This document shows, one piece after another, positions 8,444 through 44,504 of a stretch of 64,000 nucleotides of DNA. The stretch lies in the sequence record NC_027399.1. One strand, given 5' to 3'. Each line of letters starts with the position of its first letter. The stretch's first letter is position 1. A model generated the notes under the pieces. It had not been told where the DNA came from and ran no database searches. It saw nothing but the letters and a program-made list of their open reading frames with translations. Position numbers and translations under genes: made by a program.

Positions 8444-8721
8444 TTCTTTCAAAAGAAGAACGTGATATTGTACTACACGCTTTATATTTCCTTGAGAATG
8501 AAAGTATGCATACAGATGCTTCTATGGCGTTGATTGAACGTCTTCAGAAAGAAGAAATGCCAAAGATTTATCGTATCCGTTATCTTGATGGGTCTGGTGG
8601 TGATCGTATTGCCATTGCTGAATCACGAGAAGAAGCAGAACAAATCTTCACTGATAATTATTTGAATCCTTTTTTGATGGAAGAAGTTTGTGAAGTGAAA
8701 AATGGTACATTTATTGGTTGA
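8440..8721 (+). CDS. Hypothetical protein (MILS.EER family)
   Basis: GAGG SD; N-terminus shared with 8891 and 49726. Confidence 0.75.
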   Translation: MILSKEERDIVLHALYFLENESMHTDASMALIERLQKEEMPKIYRIRYLDGSGGDRIAIAESREEAEQIFTDNYLNPFLMEEVCEVKNGTFIG

Positions 8722-38026: not shown

Positions 38027-38454
38027 ACTATATTGGACGATATGGTCATTATAGTAGACAATTTAATGGATATAGGTGATTCAGTACTGATAATAATGAA
38101 TATAAATGAATAAGAATGATTCTGAATGATTAAGTACTATTAAGAATGATTAAGTACTATTCAGTACTGATATGCCACTAAGTCCGTTTATAAAGTCGCA
38201 CCCAGTGGGCTACATTTGTAACTATTCAGTACTGAATAGTTCAATTCATCAACTATTTCAAATCTAATTACCCCATTAACTAAATCCCCAAATTATATAT
38301 TAACAAAAATCTGAATAGCATGTCAAGAAAAATCTGGATTACCAACGAGAAAAAATCTGGATTTTAAAAATTTTGAAATGTCGTTTATAGTTCAGGAAAA
38401 AAATGAAATTATAACAAGAAAATTGTTGACACGTATATGATGCCATTATATAAT

Positions 38455-38945
38455 GTAATCCTCAAGACGAGAGAATGTTCTCTCACAGAAAATGCGAAGA
38501 AGCCGAGTTTATCTGTCCCTGCGTGAGTGGGCTAACATTTGAATAGGACAATACGTGGATGAATGAAAAAGGTTCAAAGGGAAGTATTTGATTCCCTGTA
38601 GTATAGTTAATGAGTTAGTACTGATATAGTTTTAATCATTGAGTAGTACTACTGTCGCAAAGGGAAACCTTTGGCTTCCATGGGGAGTGATGACAGAAGG
38701 GCATTATCCTCCATATAGAGTTACTGCGAATAACTCCGTAAGTTGGGTTGTGGCAAACCTCCTAAAATAGTGAATCTACAGTACTACTGATTGGTAGTAC
38801 TGCTTTTAATTCAAAGTGTTTCTTTCCATAGAGAAAAGGTGCATGTAACTTGAACATGTGAACTACGGGAACAGTACTGAACAATTCCAGTACTGATTCC
38901 TCTCCAAATTTTGGATACAATAATGCTAGGCTTCAGTTAGTACTG
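38455..38945 (+). ncRNA. Long structured non-coding transcript of unknown family
   Basis: TTGACA(38426) promoter with TATAAT; no ORF; many hairpins (GAGAGAA/TTCTCTC, CTGTC..GACAG, GAGTTA/TAACTC, CAGTACTAC/GTAGTACTG). Confidence 0.55.
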
Positions 38946-38947
38946 AG

Positions 38948-39066
38948 TGAGAATGATAATGATTCTCATTTGAATTGGATGAGAACGATTCTCATTTACT
39001 ATTGCAAATGATAATAGATTGCATTTACGAATGGTTCTCATTCGCAGATGATAATGATTCTTATTC
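38948..39066. promoter_or_regulatory. Tandem array of five Fur-box-like sites
   Basis: 7-1-7 inverted repeats TGATAAT-G-ATTCTCA, TGAGAAC-G-ATTCTCA, TGATAATAGATTGCA, TACGAAT-G-GTTCTCA, TGATAAT-G-ATTCTTA. Confidence 0.8.
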
Positions 39067-39198
39067 AAAATTGATTTTTCCGATTTTTTCCATTAGTCCC
39101 CCTTCAGCGTAGGGTTAATTTTTCCCCTGCCGAATCAGTTATATATTTTCAAAATCTGGATTAATCATATCAGTACTAACCCAGATAAACAATACCCT

Positions 39199-39213
39199 TT
39201 TACAAATCTTTAC
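39199..39213 (-). promoter_or_regulatory. CpxR-type box
   Basis: TTTACAAATCTTTAC = GTAAA-N5-GTAAA on minus strand. Confidence 0.55.
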
Positions 39214-39227
39214 AAAAAGATTCTAAA

Positions 39228-39257
39228 TGCGAATACAAATGATAATGATTCTCATTT
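39228..39257. promoter_or_regulatory. Extended Fur box
   Basis: TGCGAATACAAATGATAATGATTCTCATTT. Confidence 0.8.
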
Positions 39258-39345
39258 ACAGTACTGAATACTTTTTCCCACGCCCTGGCGTCTCCGGTTA
39301 CTCCCGTCTATATAAACATTATACAGTACTGAAATATTAAGTCAA
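39240..39345 (-). ncRNA. Gene-less promoter element, divergent member of the CCC..GGGTG family
   Basis: TTGACT-16-TATAAT on minus strand; GACGCCAGGGCGTGGG core; runs into Fur box. Confidence 0.5.
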
Positions 39346-39377
39346 TACTATTTTTCAAAAAGATTAAAATAAAATAC

Positions 39378-39484
39378 TTGCAATCATTGTATTATTATAT
39401 TATAATGTTTACAGTACTGAGAAAGTTCTTTTGCCCGCTAGGGTGCGGGGGAGTATGCGTTAAATGAGAATGATAATCATTTAC
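39378..39484 (+). ncRNA. Gene-less promoter element (CCC..GGGTG family) ending in Fur box
   Basis: TTGCAA-17-TATAAT; GCCCGCTAGGGTGCGGGGGAGTAT; GAGAATGATAATCATTTAC (16/19 to Fur consensus). Confidence 0.6.
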
Positions 39485-39489
39485 AGTAC

Positions 39490-39584
39490 TGGACGGATTT
39501 TCCCACCCTCGGGGGTCTCTTTTTGTCTATGTAGTAATTATACAGTACTGGAATACTATATCAAGTCTCTTTACAAATCTTTAC
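39490..39584 (-). ncRNA. Gene-less promoter element convergent on the same Fur box
   Basis: CpxR-type box 39570..39584, TTGATA-16-TATAAT, CCCCCGAGGGTGGGA. Confidence 0.55.
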
Positions 39585-39678
39585 AATTCACCCGGGTAGA
39601 TTTATCTTTACTGTAAAAGTACTTGCATAATTCTTTCAGTACTGCTATTATATATTCATACCAAACAGGAGAACTACC

Positions 39679-39831
39679 ATGAAATACGCGTACTCTTATT
39701 TTATTGTAAACGGTGAACGTTTGACCATCGGCCAGGCTGCTGTAAAACATGAAATCATTTGCGATGATCTGGCAAAGATGCTACCAGGTGAAACGCAAGA
39801 GTTTTACAAAGGCTTCAGAAAGTCATTGTAA
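39679..39831 (+). CDS. Small early hypothetical protein (not in track)
   Basis: Own promoter, AGGAG SD. Confidence 0.7.
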   Translation: MKYAYSYFIVNGERLTIGQAAVKHEIICDDLAKMLPGETQEFYKGFRKSL

Positions 39832-39913
39832 CACGTTGTGAAGATTGATCCAGTATTAGGGGTAGGAATACCCCTAAAACGTCCTATAACGCATTATAAG
39901 AGGTTTTTATAAT

Positions 39914-40141
39914 ATGGCTATAGAAGTTAACGCTGGGGATATAAAGGCGGCTGTACTGCGTACCCTGAAAGCATACGGCAGAAAGCTGAATGATCGAAAC
40001 GTTCCCTATTATTTCCTTGCTGCTACTCATAAAATGGCAATCGCTGAGGCTCGCGGGTGGCTGAATGATCGCAGTACTGTAAAGAGTACCAGAACAAGAA
40101 ACGCAATTGAGCGATGGATAAAAGAATTAAATCATTTCTAA
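39914..40141 (+). CDS. Hypothetical protein
   Basis: GAGG SD, host-like codons. Confidence 0.75.
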   Translation: MAIEVNAGDIKAAVLRTLKAYGRKLNDRNVPYYFLAATHKMAIAEARGWLNDRSTVKSTRTRNAIERWIKELNHF

Positions 40142-40214
40142 TAGTTCAGTAAAGGGAATCAGTACTGATTCCCTGTTTAGTACTGAAATTATAAGGGGAG
40201 TTAATTAATTCCCC

Positions 40215-40345
40215 TTTACAAATCTTTACAAAAGAATTGTTGACATAGTATCCCAGTACTGGTATTATGTATTCATAGACAGAACAAGTCTTTGGCCCAC
40301 AGGGTGCGGAGGAGTATCTATTAAATGAGAATGATAATCATTTAC
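40215..40345 (+). ncRNA. Gene-less promoter element (CCC..GGGTG family) ending in Fur box
   Basis: CpxR-type box 40215..40229; TTGACA-17-TATTAT; AGAC-AGAACAA-GTCT hairpin; GCCCACAGGGTGCGGAGGAGTATCTAT; Fur box 40327..40345. Confidence 0.65.
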
Positions 40346-40349
40346 AGTA

Positions 40350-40452
40350 CTGAATATATTTCCGCACCCTTTTGGGCTTTTCGATTCCTCTCTACTTGCT
40401 AATAAGTATATCATAATCATTACTGAATGCAATGGTCTTTACAAATCTTTAC
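40350..40452 (-). ncRNA. Convergent gene-less promoter element
   Basis: CpxR-type box 40438..40452; TTGCAT-16-TATACT; GCCCAAAAGGGTGCGGA. Confidence 0.55.
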
Positions 40453-40549
40453 AAAAGAAAATAATTATAAAAAGTACTGAAAAAGTACTTGACGTAATAA
40501 TGTAGTACTGGCATAATGAGTACATACCAAACAGAACGGAGTAACTAAA

Positions 40550-40837
40550 ATGTTTAATGAAAATGATCATATTGTTAAAGAGTTTTCTTTCAGTAAGCCG
40601 ATCCATTTAGAAAACGGTGAAACACTGGACAATAAATTTTATGGTAGTATTATTAAGCGTTATACATCGCGGAGTAGTACTGGAATTTTATGGGAAGTGA
40701 ATAAACAGTACAATGGTAATTCGCTGGTTGTCAATGAGTGGGAAAGTTATGCAGTAGCGGAAATGGATTTTTCTAACTTCATTACTGAATCTTTGAACGA
40801 TGATATCTTTTACAAGTTCACAGCGGAAAGGGTTTAA
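40550..40837 (+). CDS. Early hypothetical protein
   Basis: Promoter plus GGAG SD. Confidence 0.8.
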   Translation: MFNENDHIVKEFSFSKPIHLENGETLDNKFYGSIIKRYTSRSSTGILWEVNKQYNGNSLVVNEWESYAVAEMDFSNFITESLNDDIFYKFTAERV

Positions 40838-40956
40838 AAAGTTTTAAAGAGTACTTGACAACATAATTCAGTACTGTATAATGTATTGCATAGAAAGGAG
40901 ATTCCAGAATAATGGAATCTCCGATAAAACAAACTATCAGTGAAGGAGTAATTGCC

Positions 40957-41568
40957 ATGAATGTTATCGATACCATCTATTCTAAATCTTTTATCGAACT
41001 GAATGAAGAGCAGAAAGAAAAAGCAATCGATGTTATGCGGGAACTGGATCGCCATGATTCAGATCCATTCTGGGCACAATTAATTAATGAAGATAAACAA
41101 GAATTAATGAATAATGAATATGGTTTTACTGATGCTGTAATTCATTATAGCGGCTTTTGCTCACAAGGTGACGGGGCGTCAATTAGTACTGAATCAATCG
41201 ACGCTGAGACGTTTTTACGCAAAATTAAAGCATGGTCGAAATTCCGTGTATTGCATAAACATTTCAATGATGGTACTATTACATTAAAGATCGAACGCAA
41301 CGATCATCGTTATTCGCATGAAAATACTGTTTCTGGTGTGGTGGATTTGGATTATTATACTGAATTCACTGCTAAACAAGAAGAGAAAGCGGAAGAGCTG
41401 GAGACGCTTTTGACTGAAACTATCCGTGATCTTTCACGTCAACATTACCAGGAGTTAAGCGACGAAAACGATTATCAAAATAGTGATGAAGCATTGATTG
41501 AATCGATTAATGCAAATGATTATAATTTCAAAGTTAACAGTACTGGTAACGTATTGGGGTTAGCGTAA
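40957..41568 (+). CDS. Early hypothetical protein
   Basis: AAGGAG SD; YSGFCSQGDGASI motif. Confidence 0.85.
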   Translation: MNVIDTIYSKSFIELNEEQKEKAIDVMRELDRHDSDPFWAQLINEDKQELMNNEYGFTDAVIHYSGFCSQGDGASISTESIDAETFLRKIKAWSKFRVLHKHFNDGTITLKIERNDHRYSHENTVSGVVDLDYYTEFTAKQEEKAEELETLLTETIRDLSRQHYQELSDENDYQNSDEALIESINANDYNFKVNSTGNVLGLA

Positions 41569-42462: not shown

Positions 42463-42822
42463 ATGCGAGCTTTTAACGTTTATAAGAATGACAAAAAAAT
42501 TGACGTTGTTTATTATTCCGAAGTAATGACGGCAAAAGAAGTAACCGATTTGCTGAATAGCCGTGGTGAATACAACGGCGAAGTAAAAGCATTTCGGTCA
42601 TTGAATAGTGCGAATATTCGCACAGTACTGAAAAATGCTAAAACTGTTTTATTCAATGATGACGAATATTTTAATAAAGATGTTACGGGTATTAAAAACC
42701 TGGAAGATCTGAAAAGCCTTATTGGTATTAAAGGCAACGTATACAAAGTGGGGGAAGTCGGATCTCGCCATGAATATAAATTAGCCAATAGTGATTATAA
42801 ATTTTCAATCCTGGTAATGTAA
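42463..42822 (+). CDS. Early hypothetical protein
   Basis: Promoter-stem-loop-AAGGAG cassette. Confidence 0.8.
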   Translation: MRAFNVYKNDKKIDVVYYSEVMTAKEVTDLLNSRGEYNGEVKAFRSLNSANIRTVLKNAKTVLFNDDEYFNKDVTGIKNLEDLKSLIGIKGNVYKVGEVGSRHEYKLANSDYKFSILVM

Positions 42823-44003: not shown

Positions 44004-44504
44004 ATGGCTAAACTGAATTCTGTTGTTGTTGCTCTGATCGCTGGTGATATCGCTGCTCTGAATGCTTCTTTCGCGTCGGTATCGATGGAAGATATGAAAA
44101 CTGTTCGTAACAACTTTAACGATTTTTACTCTAAATTCAAAGCTGCAAATGAAGCGGCGGAAGCGGCTGCAAAAGAGCGTAAAGCACAGATCGAAACCGA
44201 AACGAAAGAACTGGTAGACGCCCTGGTAACTGCTGGCCTGGATCTGGAAATGGCCGCCGAAGTCGCCAGCCAGAAAATGGCGGTGAAATATCCCGAACTG
44301 GCTCCGAAGTCGGGAACTGGTAAAACCTGGTCGTTTGAAACCGTATTCGTTAACGTTGACGGTGAAAAACTGGAAATTGGCACCAAAGGCAACAAAGGCA
44401 GTATGAAAGCACTGGCGGCGGCACGCGAAGCAATTGCCGCTGGCAAATACAAAGATCGTGCTGAATGGATCGCCGCTCACGCCTGGACTGAAACCGAAGC
44501 GTAA
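44004..44504 (+). CDS. H-NS/MvaT-like nucleoid-associated protein (putative)
   Basis: Ala/Glu-rich coiled coil ending ALVTAGLD (H-NS MLIADGID); KY...GTGKTWS (H-NS KY...GETKTWTG); GEKLEIGTKGN (MvaT GEVIETKGGN); highly expressed codon bias; AAGGTG SD. Confidence 0.55.
   Translation: MAKLNSVVVALIAGDIAALNASFASVSMEDMKTVRNNFNDFYSKFKAANEAAEAAAKERKAQIETETKELVDALVTAGLDLEMAAEVASQKMAVKYPELAPKSGTGKTWSFETVFVNVDGEKLEIGTKGNKGSMKALAAAREAIAAGKYKDRAEWIAAHAWTETEA

Follow-up and report, generated by a model that had tools for sequence, protein, structure and literature searches.

Clustered predicted Fur boxes in the terminal-repeat leader of the Klebsiella jumbo phage K64-1

The DNA examined here originates from Klebsiella phage K64-1, a RaK2-like jumbo phage with a genome of 346.6 kb, of which a window of 64 kb (the whole stretch of sequence that was analysed) was studied. 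The region of interest, at 38948-40345, is part of a ~20-kb direct terminal repeat and lies 0.8-2.2 kb from its left end, as judged from homology: the K64-1 terminal repeat and its left end (window ~38181) were inferred via homology to phage Muenster. A location at the genome end had been proposed in a preliminary description of this DNA, and it is backed by homology to phages with determined termini. As the boxes described below lie in the gene-poor leader of the repeat, two sets of them per virion DNA would be expected. The leader is AT-rich, and the terminal repeat encodes an H-NS-N-domain protein.

The same description presented the 1.4 kb as non-coding. This is correct for most of its length, the exceptions being two small ORFs (39679-39831 and 39914-40141), each ~97% identical in Muenster. 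A weak homologue of the first was found in another lineage (fENko-Kae01, E 6e-5), and none was detected for the second, the counterpart of which is noted as sigma-factor-like by HHpred in the Muenster record. That record also describes the homologue of 42463-42822 as "flavodoxin-like", which was not reproduced by Pfam at E <=0.01. Among the ten neighbouring ORFs searched with Pfam and PHROGs there was indeed no iron-related gene. The features of the region are listed here with their window coordinates and, where one applies, their strand; the promoters are predictions, and the bit scores are those of the Fur matrix introduced below.

38946..39071, no strand: tandem array of five Fur-box units, found by matrix scan, starting ~765 bp from the inferred left end
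38952-38970 and 39047-39065, no strand: strong units of the array (19.8 and 13.2 bits, respectively, by the matrix)
38978, 39007 and 39030, no strand: degenerate units of the array (7.3, 6.4 and 4.5 bits, respectively, by the matrix)
39232..39262, no strand: extended Fur box, with 19.8 bits at 39238-39256 and overlapping matches of 13.9 bits (-6) and 12.2 bits (+6)
39318..39345, minus strand: P_L1, a sigma-70-type promoter (11/12 match, spacer 16) with a homologue kept in Muenster
39378..39406, plus strand: P_R2, promoter of the short hairpin transcript of cassette 2 (10/12 match, spacer 17)
39430..39525, plus strand: cassette 2, a long inverted repeat with GC-rich arms and a Fur box in its apical ~50 nt
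39463..39487, no strand: cassette 2 Fur box, with a 19.5-bit match at 39463-39481 and a 14.1-bit match shifted by +6
39537..39564, minus strand: P_L2, convergent with P_R2 (11/12 match, spacer 16)
40240..40268, plus strand: P_R3 (11/12 match, TG-extended)
40291..40385, plus strand: cassette 3, in which a long inverted repeat with the Fur box at its apex precedes a T run (RNA fold z = -4.6)
40324..40348, no strand: cassette 3 Fur box, with a 19.5-bit match at 40324-40342 and a 14.1-bit match shifted by +6
40405..40432, minus strand: P_L3, a possible promoter recognised by eye (-35 hexamer 3/6, spacer 16), below the scan rule and weaker than P_L1 and P_L2

A matrix for a 19-nt palindromic Fur motif was derived de novo from nine Fur-regulated promoters of E. 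coli, and its best nine matches in the whole window were all inside the box region. Four phage boxes scored 19.5-19.8 bits, compared with 10.3-16.5 bits for the training sites (leave-one-out). When the 19-bp Fur consensus from PMC3145626 was used, matches of 16/19 were present at 38949, 39241, 39466 and 40327 and at no other position of the 64-kb window, in agreement with the 16/19 boxes first reported at 39466 and 40327, and further boxes in the region matched at 14-15/19. Functional boxes with 11/19 and 13/19 consensus matches bind Fur (PMC3145626), and the phage boxes score within or above three K. pneumoniae boxes confirmed in FURTA and EMSA experiments, which match at 13-16/19. In the reverse test, a matrix built from the phage boxes only placed 12 of its 15 top matches in three Fur-footprinted ent/fep intergenic regions of the single 26-kb E. 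coli locus that was searched. Overlapping sites with a 6-bp offset occur at 38946/38952/38958, 39232/39238/39244, 39463/39469 and 40324/40330; these overlaps reproduce the rule for Fur-site clusters, in which overlapping sites are 6 (or 3) bases apart (Chen et al. 2007, PMC2189734), and were counted in favour of Fur-box identity. Every box claimed in the preliminary description was recovered where it had been placed. All five tandem units were present, at a spacing of 17-29 bp, two of them being strong and three degenerate, and the "extended box" proved to be three overlapping matches 6 bp apart at 39232-39262.

At >=18 bits, four matches were found in the 1.4-kb region and one in the other 345 kb of the genome, the latter within a tail-fibre gene. 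Similar sites are thus not equally frequent elsewhere, since 4/5 of the genome matches at this threshold are within 1.4 kb. Dinucleotide shuffling of the region (1000 shuffles) gave an expectation of 0.001 matches of >=18 bits against the 4 observed; these are not four independent events, since two of the strong boxes are duplicates that form part of an 80-nt repeat. The observed count was reached in none of the shuffles (0/1000) at any threshold, and a chance origin was ruled out by the shuffles together with the genome-wide scan. The forward and reverse matrix searches, the validated K. pneumoniae boxes, the genome skew and the cross-genus conservation presented below give strong in silico support to the original identification of the motif as a Fur box, and it is very probable (approximately 0.85) that host Fe(II)-Fur binds these boxes.

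Strong boxes were present at syntenic places in phages Muenster, fENko-Kae01, Munch, Hallingskeid and XaC1, the flanks having diverged. Conservation in related phages had been proposed as a check, and boxes were found at matching positions in three other lineages, the hosts of which are Klebsiella/Salmonella, Erwinia and Xanthomonas. Homologous arrays are carried by Muenster, fENko-Kae01, Munch and Hallingskeid, and a 31-nt stretch of the extended box is almost identical in XaC1. Box alleles differ from each other by hexamer swaps or one added hexamer, and most stay at 17-21 bits; for the cassette 3 box, four alleles occur among six Alcyoneusvirus genomes, each of them Fur-like. Unrelated phage-like contigs, at least four of them, carry similar clusters, and this points to a common host factor. 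Megablast of these unrelated box-bearing contigs returned no relatives, with adapter-like end matches only.

The palindromes might instead be operators of a phage-encoded or another host protein, the likeness to Fur boxes being coincidental. The boxes are situated among small early genes, including the one noted as sigma-factor-like (39914-40141), and a different repeat, of the CTRRAYGG type, occupies the same three positions in the sister genus Asteriusvirus (E. coli phages), a swap of the kind expected of a co-evolving phage protein and its site. However, the phage boxes fit the host Fur matrix better than real host sites do, Fur promoters are recovered in the reverse test, the allelic changes obey the hexamer logic and the same motif is found in unrelated phages, all of which make such a binder improbable. 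A tblastn search with E. coli Fur in 50,697 phage records gave no homologue in any RaK2-like phage, by which a phage-encoded Fur was ruled out. For a 75-aa neighbouring ORF, no homologue could be detected in the repeat segments fetched from four lineages with boxes, and no DNA-binding or iron family was assigned to it by Pfam or PHROGs; its product was ruled out as the box binder as it did not co-occur with the boxes. Iterons or pac sites for a phage protein were also rejected, because the motif is the host Fur motif and is present in unrelated phages (neighbouring genes were checked).

The relation of the boxes to promoters was assessed in K64-1, Muenster, fENko-Kae01 and Hallingskeid, and no box of >=15 bits was on a promoter-like site of >=10/12. 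The boxes do occupy a promoter-dense leader, but at ~+60 and off the promoter cores. The preliminary interpretation is supported as regards the Fur-box identity and the genome-end location. Gating of the early transcripts by classical promoter occlusion was ruled out by the box-promoter geometry, with no strong box on a -35/-10. The preliminary description had overlooked the inverted repeats with apical boxes between convergent promoters, the leftward promoters ahead of the boxes and the exchange of the repeat in Asteriusvirus. Box centres are at +58 to +67 from the flanking promoters in four lineages, and these promoters are convergent in the complete cassettes. In K64-1, the extended box, which sits in a 5'-truncated copy of the hairpin cassette, is centred ~+64 from P_L1, the cassette 2 box +59 from P_R2 and +58 from P_L2, and the cassette 3 box +58 from P_R3. 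P_L2 is kept in fEgEco12, fENko-Kae01 and Hallingskeid despite differing spacer sequences. In relatives the array is 100-260 nt downstream of a leftward promoter; in fENko-Kae01 and fEgEco12 the array has such a promoter to its right, the K64-1 counterpart of which is weak.

K64-1 has two complete cassettes and one truncated cassette, and its relatives have two per repeat. The single boxes of the two complete cassettes form the apex of an inverted repeat that is conserved (with two compensatory pairs) between convergent promoters, and the 3' part of cassette 2 contains a terminator-like hairpin at 39500-39515 followed by a T run. Fold z-scores were -3.7 to -6.5 in 4/5 elements. Alternatively, the box could act in RNA, as the apical hairpin of a small early transcript (or as a single strand), in which case its likeness to a Fur site would be irrelevant. 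It lies within a short promoter-to-terminator unit, a 6-bp stem with a 9-nt loop is possible, and the long stem around it is conserved with some covariation. Nevertheless, the five-unit array and a box over an ORF start in Hallingskeid are outside any such hairpin, the hairpin of fEgEco12 is kept without the box (its apical loops hold unrelated filler sequence), and the fifth element (z = -1.2) folded no better than shuffles. Rfam gave zero matches in the whole window at gathering thresholds, and only two sub-threshold chance matches in 38100-40950 at relaxed E-values. A known RNA family, RyhB included, was ruled out by these scans as an explanation of the cassettes, and a role of the box at the RNA level is very improbable.

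A box ~60 nt downstream of leftward promoters, off their cores and in convergent cassettes, makes a barrier to transcription the most likely role. The boxes would be high-affinity operators for the host Fe(II)-Fur repressor in the terminal-repeat leader, on which Fur dimers are predicted to load cooperatively because of the 6-bp-offset overlaps and the five-unit array. Fur on the boxes would then act as an iron-dependent roadblock or insulator, stopping leftward antisense transcription before it reached the rightward early units and the genome end, and the output of the early region would follow the iron state of the host. We infer, at a probability of about 0.4, that bound Fur would block RNA polymerase here as an iron-dependent barrier to leftward early transcription, with a consequence for infection physiology. 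Several observations count against such a barrier. Host Fur clusters between a promoter and a start codon repress only weakly (Chen et al. 2007, PMC2189734), and one cluster may therefore make an inefficient roadblock. A symmetric block would meet rightward polymerases too, and the constant distance of ~+60 could just reflect the presence of the box in a tolerant apical loop. The products of P_R2 and P_R3 are merely short non-coding transcripts, the leftward promoter proximal to the array is weak in K64-1 with P_L3 being sub-threshold, and the Asteriusvirus phages do without boxes though E. coli Fur is the same.

The number of boxes might also indicate that they soak up host Fur as the phage genomes multiply. 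The host Fur regulon (iron uptake and other functions) would thereby be derepressed and feed the iron-dependent ribonucleotide reductases of the phage, of which K64-1 encodes both aerobic and anaerobic enzymes. Position relative to promoters would be unimportant for such a sink, and the boxes would sit where insertions are tolerated; this is concordant with the lack of overlap with any promoter core, with the unrelated filler in the same apical loops of fEgEco12, and with a box copy number that varies by hexamers among close relatives. Each copy of the repeat holds approximately eight boxes, a virion DNA has two such copies, and a cell contains many genomes; four of the sites beat all nine host sites, with at least four weaker sites besides, and multicopy Fur boxes titrate Fur in vivo, as in FURTA. 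On the other hand, one early genome copy cannot titrate an abundant protein, and the benefit requires ongoing host transcription and iron import during infection. The position of the array is moreover kept to within ~100 bp of the terminus in several lineages, and Asteriusvirus keeps the array place with a different motif, so the place itself appears to matter. Titration is considered unlikely as the main function.

Fur might also serve as a structural DNA-binding protein in a nucleoprotein complex near the genome end, iron dependence being secondary. Such a complex could take part in packaging or recognition of the terminus, in starting replication, or in shielding the entering end; it could also prevent H-NS-type silencers from covering the AT-rich leader, leaving the early promoters free to fire. 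The AT-richness of the leader and the H-NS-N-domain protein encoded in the repeat count in favour of an architectural use. The distance of the array from the left end is 0.7-0.9 kb in both Alcyoneusvirus and the fENko-Kae01/Munch group, and the array is at the matching place in Hallingskeid; fEgEco12 has another motif at the same place. The multi-unit arrangement and its spacing would also suit a complex of this kind, the host regulator Spo0A at the phi29 and Nf origins provides a precedent, and in several of the unrelated phage contigs the clusters are within ~1.5 kb of the contig end. These contig ends may, however, merely be assembly breaks at repeats, and boxes are also found up to 7.3 kb from the end in fENko-Kae01 and Munch, as well as over the Hallingskeid ORF start. 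Nothing ties Fur to packaging or replication, and there was no switch in GC skew at the box region. An architectural function is quite unlikely.

With the iron-dependent barrier as the preferred reading, the boxes suggest that the virus uses the iron sensor of its host on its own early control region. More broadly, and on a rather doubtful footing, Fur-box clusters might have been acquired repeatedly and convergently by virulent Enterobacterales phages as a means of reading or rewiring the host iron state, an iron analogue of the "lytic deferment" described for CtrA. Fur on the duplicated leading end would tune the early programme and replicating genomes would drain Fur from the host regulon, the clusters in unrelated contigs being further instances. 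Iron is the nutrient most tightly withheld in infected tissue. If Fur does occupy these sites, a family of Klebsiella jumbo phages that are therapeutic candidates would be wired to iron, and the phages could perform differently in iron-rich laboratory media than at iron-poor body sites. Fur would also join Spo0A and CtrA on the short list of host master regulators exploited via clustered sites by lytic phages, and the cassettes would show that operators lying between convergent promoters occur in nature.

The RaK2-like phage K64-1 is a distant relative of T4. T4-type phages reportedly carry promoter-early stem-loop (PeSL) units, in which an early sigma-70 promoter and a stem-loop/terminator are repeated between small variable early genes. 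The K64-1 cassettes are alike in organisation (promoter plus stem-loop, among small early genes), and the likeness is by organisation alone; they differ from PeSL units in having a convergent leftward promoter and a predicted host-regulator operator at the stem apex. Fur boxes are also known in front of temperate-phage cargo, such as sitABCD in lambdoid coliphages (PMC6969025), but each of those is a lone operator at an iron/manganese transporter promoter, whereas K64-1 is a virulent jumbo phage with a cluster and no iron gene. A literature search found no paper linking Fur boxes to jumbo or virulent phages.

The closest resemblance in the motif is to the Fur boxes and clusters of the Enterobacterales themselves (PMC2189734), which share the 19-bp palindrome and the 6-bp overlaps, and the footprinted or validated sites of which are equalled or exceeded by the phage scores. 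The de novo search also recovered the ryhB and feoA sites of E. coli, the half-sites of which are of the same type as those of the phage boxes. In contrast to the host clusters, the phage boxes are predicted sites on a virulent phage rather than on the host chromosome, with no iron gene near. In E. coli 303/363 clusters overlap a strong promoter (PMC2189734), whereas the phage boxes overlap no core; they are located in apical loops flanked by convergent promoters, or form the five-unit array.

Lytic phages of Alphaproteobacteria carry clusters of CtrA sites ("lytic deferment"; Mascolo et al. 2022, PMC9437464), in which high-scoring sites for a master regulator of the host are likewise crowded into one intergenic region, with a strongly skewed genomic distribution and an occurrence in several phage lineages. 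CtrA is concerned with the cell cycle and Fur with iron. The CtrA sites are at promoters and both binding and regulation have been demonstrated, whereas the predicted Fur boxes avoid promoter cores. In the Bacillus phages phi29 and Nf (PMC2731898), sites for the host global regulator Spo0A are also found in a lytic phage, both near the genome ends and at early promoters, and they couple phage development to host physiology. The Spo0A sites overlap and repress promoters and origins, a demonstrated function, and they belong to small protein-primed phages of a Gram-positive host, in contrast to the predicted Fur operators in the leader of the K64-1 terminal repeat.

Fur-type boxes had been reported in the preliminary description as packed into 38948-40345, and the repeat finder, the consensus matches and the unit count all agreed with this. 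A 21-nt unit was detected by the repeat finder in six copies (38953, 38979, 39048, 39239, 39464 and 40325), and the published 19-bp Fur consensus (PMC3145626) was matched at 16 of 19 positions at 38949, 39241, 39466 and 40327, and nowhere else in the 64 kb. Of the five units that make up the tandem stretch, spaced 17-29 bp apart, two were strong and the other three degenerate. The four strong boxes include two that belong to copies of an 80-nt repeat, so that conservation weighs more than the raw box count. In the RefSeq record, a dozen or more tiny ORFs (20-55 aa) cover the gene-poor leader at window 38033-40958 (record 224033-226958), several of them overlying Fur boxes, hairpins and promoters; they look like over-annotation, as they are absent from the Muenster and RaK2 annotations.

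From nine promoter regions under Fur control in E. coli, a Gibbs sampler recovered a palindrome of 19 nt, equivalent to the model that Chen et al. (PMC2189734) give for a single dimer. The nine training sites scored 10.3-16.5 bits (leave-one-out, against the phage base composition); among the phage boxes, the scores were 19.8 bits for 38952 and 39238 and 19.5 bits for 39463 and 40324. The nine top matches of the window all fell inside 38948-40345. Strong matches had neighbours at exactly 6 bp, and overlapping sites 6 bp apart are a known cluster signature for Fur. Three boxes of K. pneumoniae have been validated by FURTA and EMSA; with a partial matrix of 16 positions, these scored 12.6-19.9, and six phage boxes 12.9-18.7. 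In the reverse test, a matrix from the six phage units only was applied to 26 kb of ent/fep sequence from E. coli K-12; 12 of the 15 top matches lay between fepA and fes, fepD and entS, or fepB and entC, in intergenic regions that are footprinted Fur targets and make up about 3% of that locus. The scan against shuffled sequence proposed in the preliminary description gave four matches of at least 18 bits against 0.001 expected (1000 dinucleotide shuffles of the region), and none of the 1000 shuffles was as rich as the region at any threshold. The excess held over the rest of the K64-1 genome, where a piecewise scan found a single further match of at least 18 bits (in a tail-fibre gene) besides the four inside 1.4 kb. 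By all sequence criteria tried, promoter overlap excepted, the motif belongs to the Fur-box class. The box cluster is real, highly non-random and conserved.

Cassette 2, the hairpin unit with the box at 39463, was found by distant BLASTN in Alcyoneusvirus, E. coli Asteriusvirus, the fENko-Kae01/Munch group, Hallingskeid and XaC1. Conservation in related phages, another check suggested at the outset, was seen as boxes of 18-21 bits at syntenic positions in five relatives (Muenster, fENko-Kae01, Munch, Hallingskeid and XaC1). The Muenster cassette 2 box had its two hexamers exchanged and scored 20.2 bits. For cassette 3 (box at 40324), four alleles were present among six Alcyoneusvirus genomes, differing by a swap of hexamer type or one added hexamer, with a best site of 17-21 bits in each. 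No match of at least 12 bits was found across the 22-kb repeat of the E. coli Asteriusvirus fEgEco12 (L003), the layout being otherwise alike; there, a CTRRAYGG-type repeat replaces the array, with ten copies in the initial 2 kb and one in the 20 kb beyond. The two hairpin cassettes of fEgEco12 carry unrelated sequences in their loops. A single copy of the CTRRAYGG-type repeat adjoins a Fur box in K64-1 (39489), and likewise in Hallingskeid. An exact scan for the 20-nt box in IMG/VR returned 13 loci, RaK2-like genomes among them. Other contigs with the box were unrelated to RaK2-like phages, encoded terminase, portal, DNA polymerase or DnaB-type helicase, and had local clusters of matches of at least 15 bits, often within about 1.5 kb of the contig end.

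Motif clusters in other phages
L003 (fEgEco12) 721-900, 1046-1053 and 1300-1310: CTRRAYGG-type repeat at places homologous to the Fur boxes of other lineages
L020, L022, L024, L028, L030 and L032 (IMG/VR): unrelated phage-like contigs with strong Fur-matrix clusters, several near the contig end

Relatives of these six contigs were not found in the phage collection. L020 had three Fur-matrix matches 27-29 bp apart, and L022 had three copies of a 9-10-nt repeat with a Fur box directly after; this repeat resembles DnaA boxes.

The K64-1 leader is crowded with sigma-70-type promoters. A complete cassette consists, in order, of a rightward promoter, a leader of about 45 nt, a GC-rich inverted repeat, a T run and a conserved leftward promoter, with the Fur box in the apical 50 nt or so of the inverted repeat.

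Features of the K64-1 leader
38426-38454, plus strand: perfect 12/12 promoter, driving a non-coding stretch of about 350 nt within 38426-38810
38779-38802: terminator-like hairpin at the end of this stretch
39345-39318 and 39564-39537, minus strand: leftward promoters

The stretch at 38426-38810 corresponds to the structured ncRNA of the preliminary description; its layout is kept in fEgEco12, fENko-Kae01 and Hallingskeid, and it had no Rfam match. The counterpart leftward promoters in these three phages differ in spacer sequence. A third cassette copy (39228-39345) has no left arm. An additional leftward promoter lies just right of the array in fENko-Kae01 and fEgEco12, the K64-1 counterpart being weak. 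In K64-1, Muenster, fENko-Kae01 and Hallingskeid, box centres were at +58 to +67 as counted from the nominal start of a flanking promoter, a distance that holds for both convergent promoters of complete cassettes, and no box of at least 15 bits overlapped a promoter-like site of at least 10/12. Classical promoter occlusion by Fur is unsupported by this geometry, the boxes being off the promoter cores. In Hallingskeid (L011), a 15.6-bit box at 8700-8718 is placed between a promoter and the start of a small early ORF, the homologue of K64-1 39679-39831, and covers its annotated start codon; no other box examined is so placed that it could act on the translation or the initiation of a protein gene.

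The reading that we favour, with a probability of roughly 40%, is that the boxes form an iron-dependent barrier, in which Fur on a box would be a roadblock to leftward transcription. It is favoured because each well-supported leftward promoter has a top-grade box within about 60 nt downstream, because the array is downstream of a leftward promoter in relatives, and because a roadblock calls for multiple very strong sites, as here. The presence of another repeat at the same three places in the sister genus suggests a generic bound-protein function, with the protein swappable. A purely RNA-level role of the boxes seems highly improbable. The long stem itself is supported by RNA folding, with z between -3.7 and -6.5 for four out of five elements, and by two compensatory pairs out of 13 predicted. 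Each repeat has the two-arm pattern two times, where chance would give zero, and Rfam gave nothing at the leader cassettes.

No Fur homologue was detectable by tblastn in RaK2-like phages. Cassettes 2 and 3 are separated by a small sigma-like ORF, and the segments retrieved for four other lineages with boxes had no homologue of it. Given these results and the motif in unrelated phages, host Fur is the economical binder, and it very probably binds the K64-1 boxes. Binding by a phage-encoded protein is improbable; this and the RNA-level role are less likely than the barrier or the two readings that follow. As initially described, no iron-related gene is adjacent: ten neighbouring ORFs had no iron-related family. 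The early ORF at 44004-44504 (plus strand; 166 aa), inside the terminal repeat and with homologues in fEgEco12 and Hallingskeid, carries the N-terminal (oligomerisation) domain of H-NS (PF22470 in Pfam; 27.1 bits, cut-off 24.5), and its product is possibly a phage-made H-NS mimic or antagonist.

By megablast, the window belongs to K64-1, a Klebsiella phage in Alcyoneusvirus; this RaK2-like jumbo myovirus has 346,602 bp, and subtracting 186,000 from a record position gives the window position. Window 38181 aligned with Muenster position 1, and from this homology we infer the left end of the K64-1 terminal repeat there, so that the boxes would lie about 0.77-2.17 kb inside it. Long repeats of roughly 20 kb are known in relatives, with 20,993 bp in fEgEco12 (confirmed by restriction digests) and 22,456 bp in CBB (backed by read depth and PFGE), and homology to such phages supports the earlier placement of the boxes near a genome end. 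G+C is 0.34-0.41 at about 35000-58000 against about 0.28-0.31 on both sides, a domain roughly matching the putative repeat (38181 to about 58200). An architectural role near the genome end, anti-silencing included, would be in keeping with an unvarying distance to the terminus; we consider this role quite unlikely. That the boxes are a sink for Fur is somewhat unlikely; it would fit the number and strength of the sites, their insertion-tolerant positions, their duplication through the terminal repeat and the iron-dependent ribonucleotide reductases of the phage. A sink effect would be a physical consequence of Fur binding, and the readings, the iron-dependent barrier included, are compatible with one another.

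Other motifs were enriched across the window, most densely at 36000-60000: the palindrome CAGTACTG had 107 occurrences where base composition predicts 0.6, and AGTACT had 293 where 21.5 are predicted. In many early promoters the palindrome directly precedes the -10 hexamer; it also lies beside -35 hexamers, behind Fur boxes and within terminator stems. It may be an additional motif, for protein binding or for promoter specificity. The 17-nt element TTTACAAATCTTTACAA (39199, 39570, 40215, 40438, 47133 and 48546) lies shortly 5' of rightward early promoters, also preceding a cassette promoter in fEgEco12 (L003, about 3118), and could act like an UP element or be bound by a regulator.

Temperate phages are known to have single Fur boxes in front of cargo genes (PMC6969025); for virulent or jumbo phages, a literature search of incomplete coverage turned up no account of Fur-box clusters. 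The function of the K64-1 boxes is open to direct test by occupancy and transcript-end mapping. Compared with host Fur boxes, the K64-1 motif, a predicted Fur target, is of the same class but lacks the usual promoter overlap. Closest in kind to the K64-1 cluster are the CtrA-site clusters of Alphaproteobacteria phages (PMC9437464) and the Spo0A boxes of phi29 and Nf (PMC2731898), and the cassettes are alike in organisation to the PeSL promoter/stem-loop units of T4-type phages.
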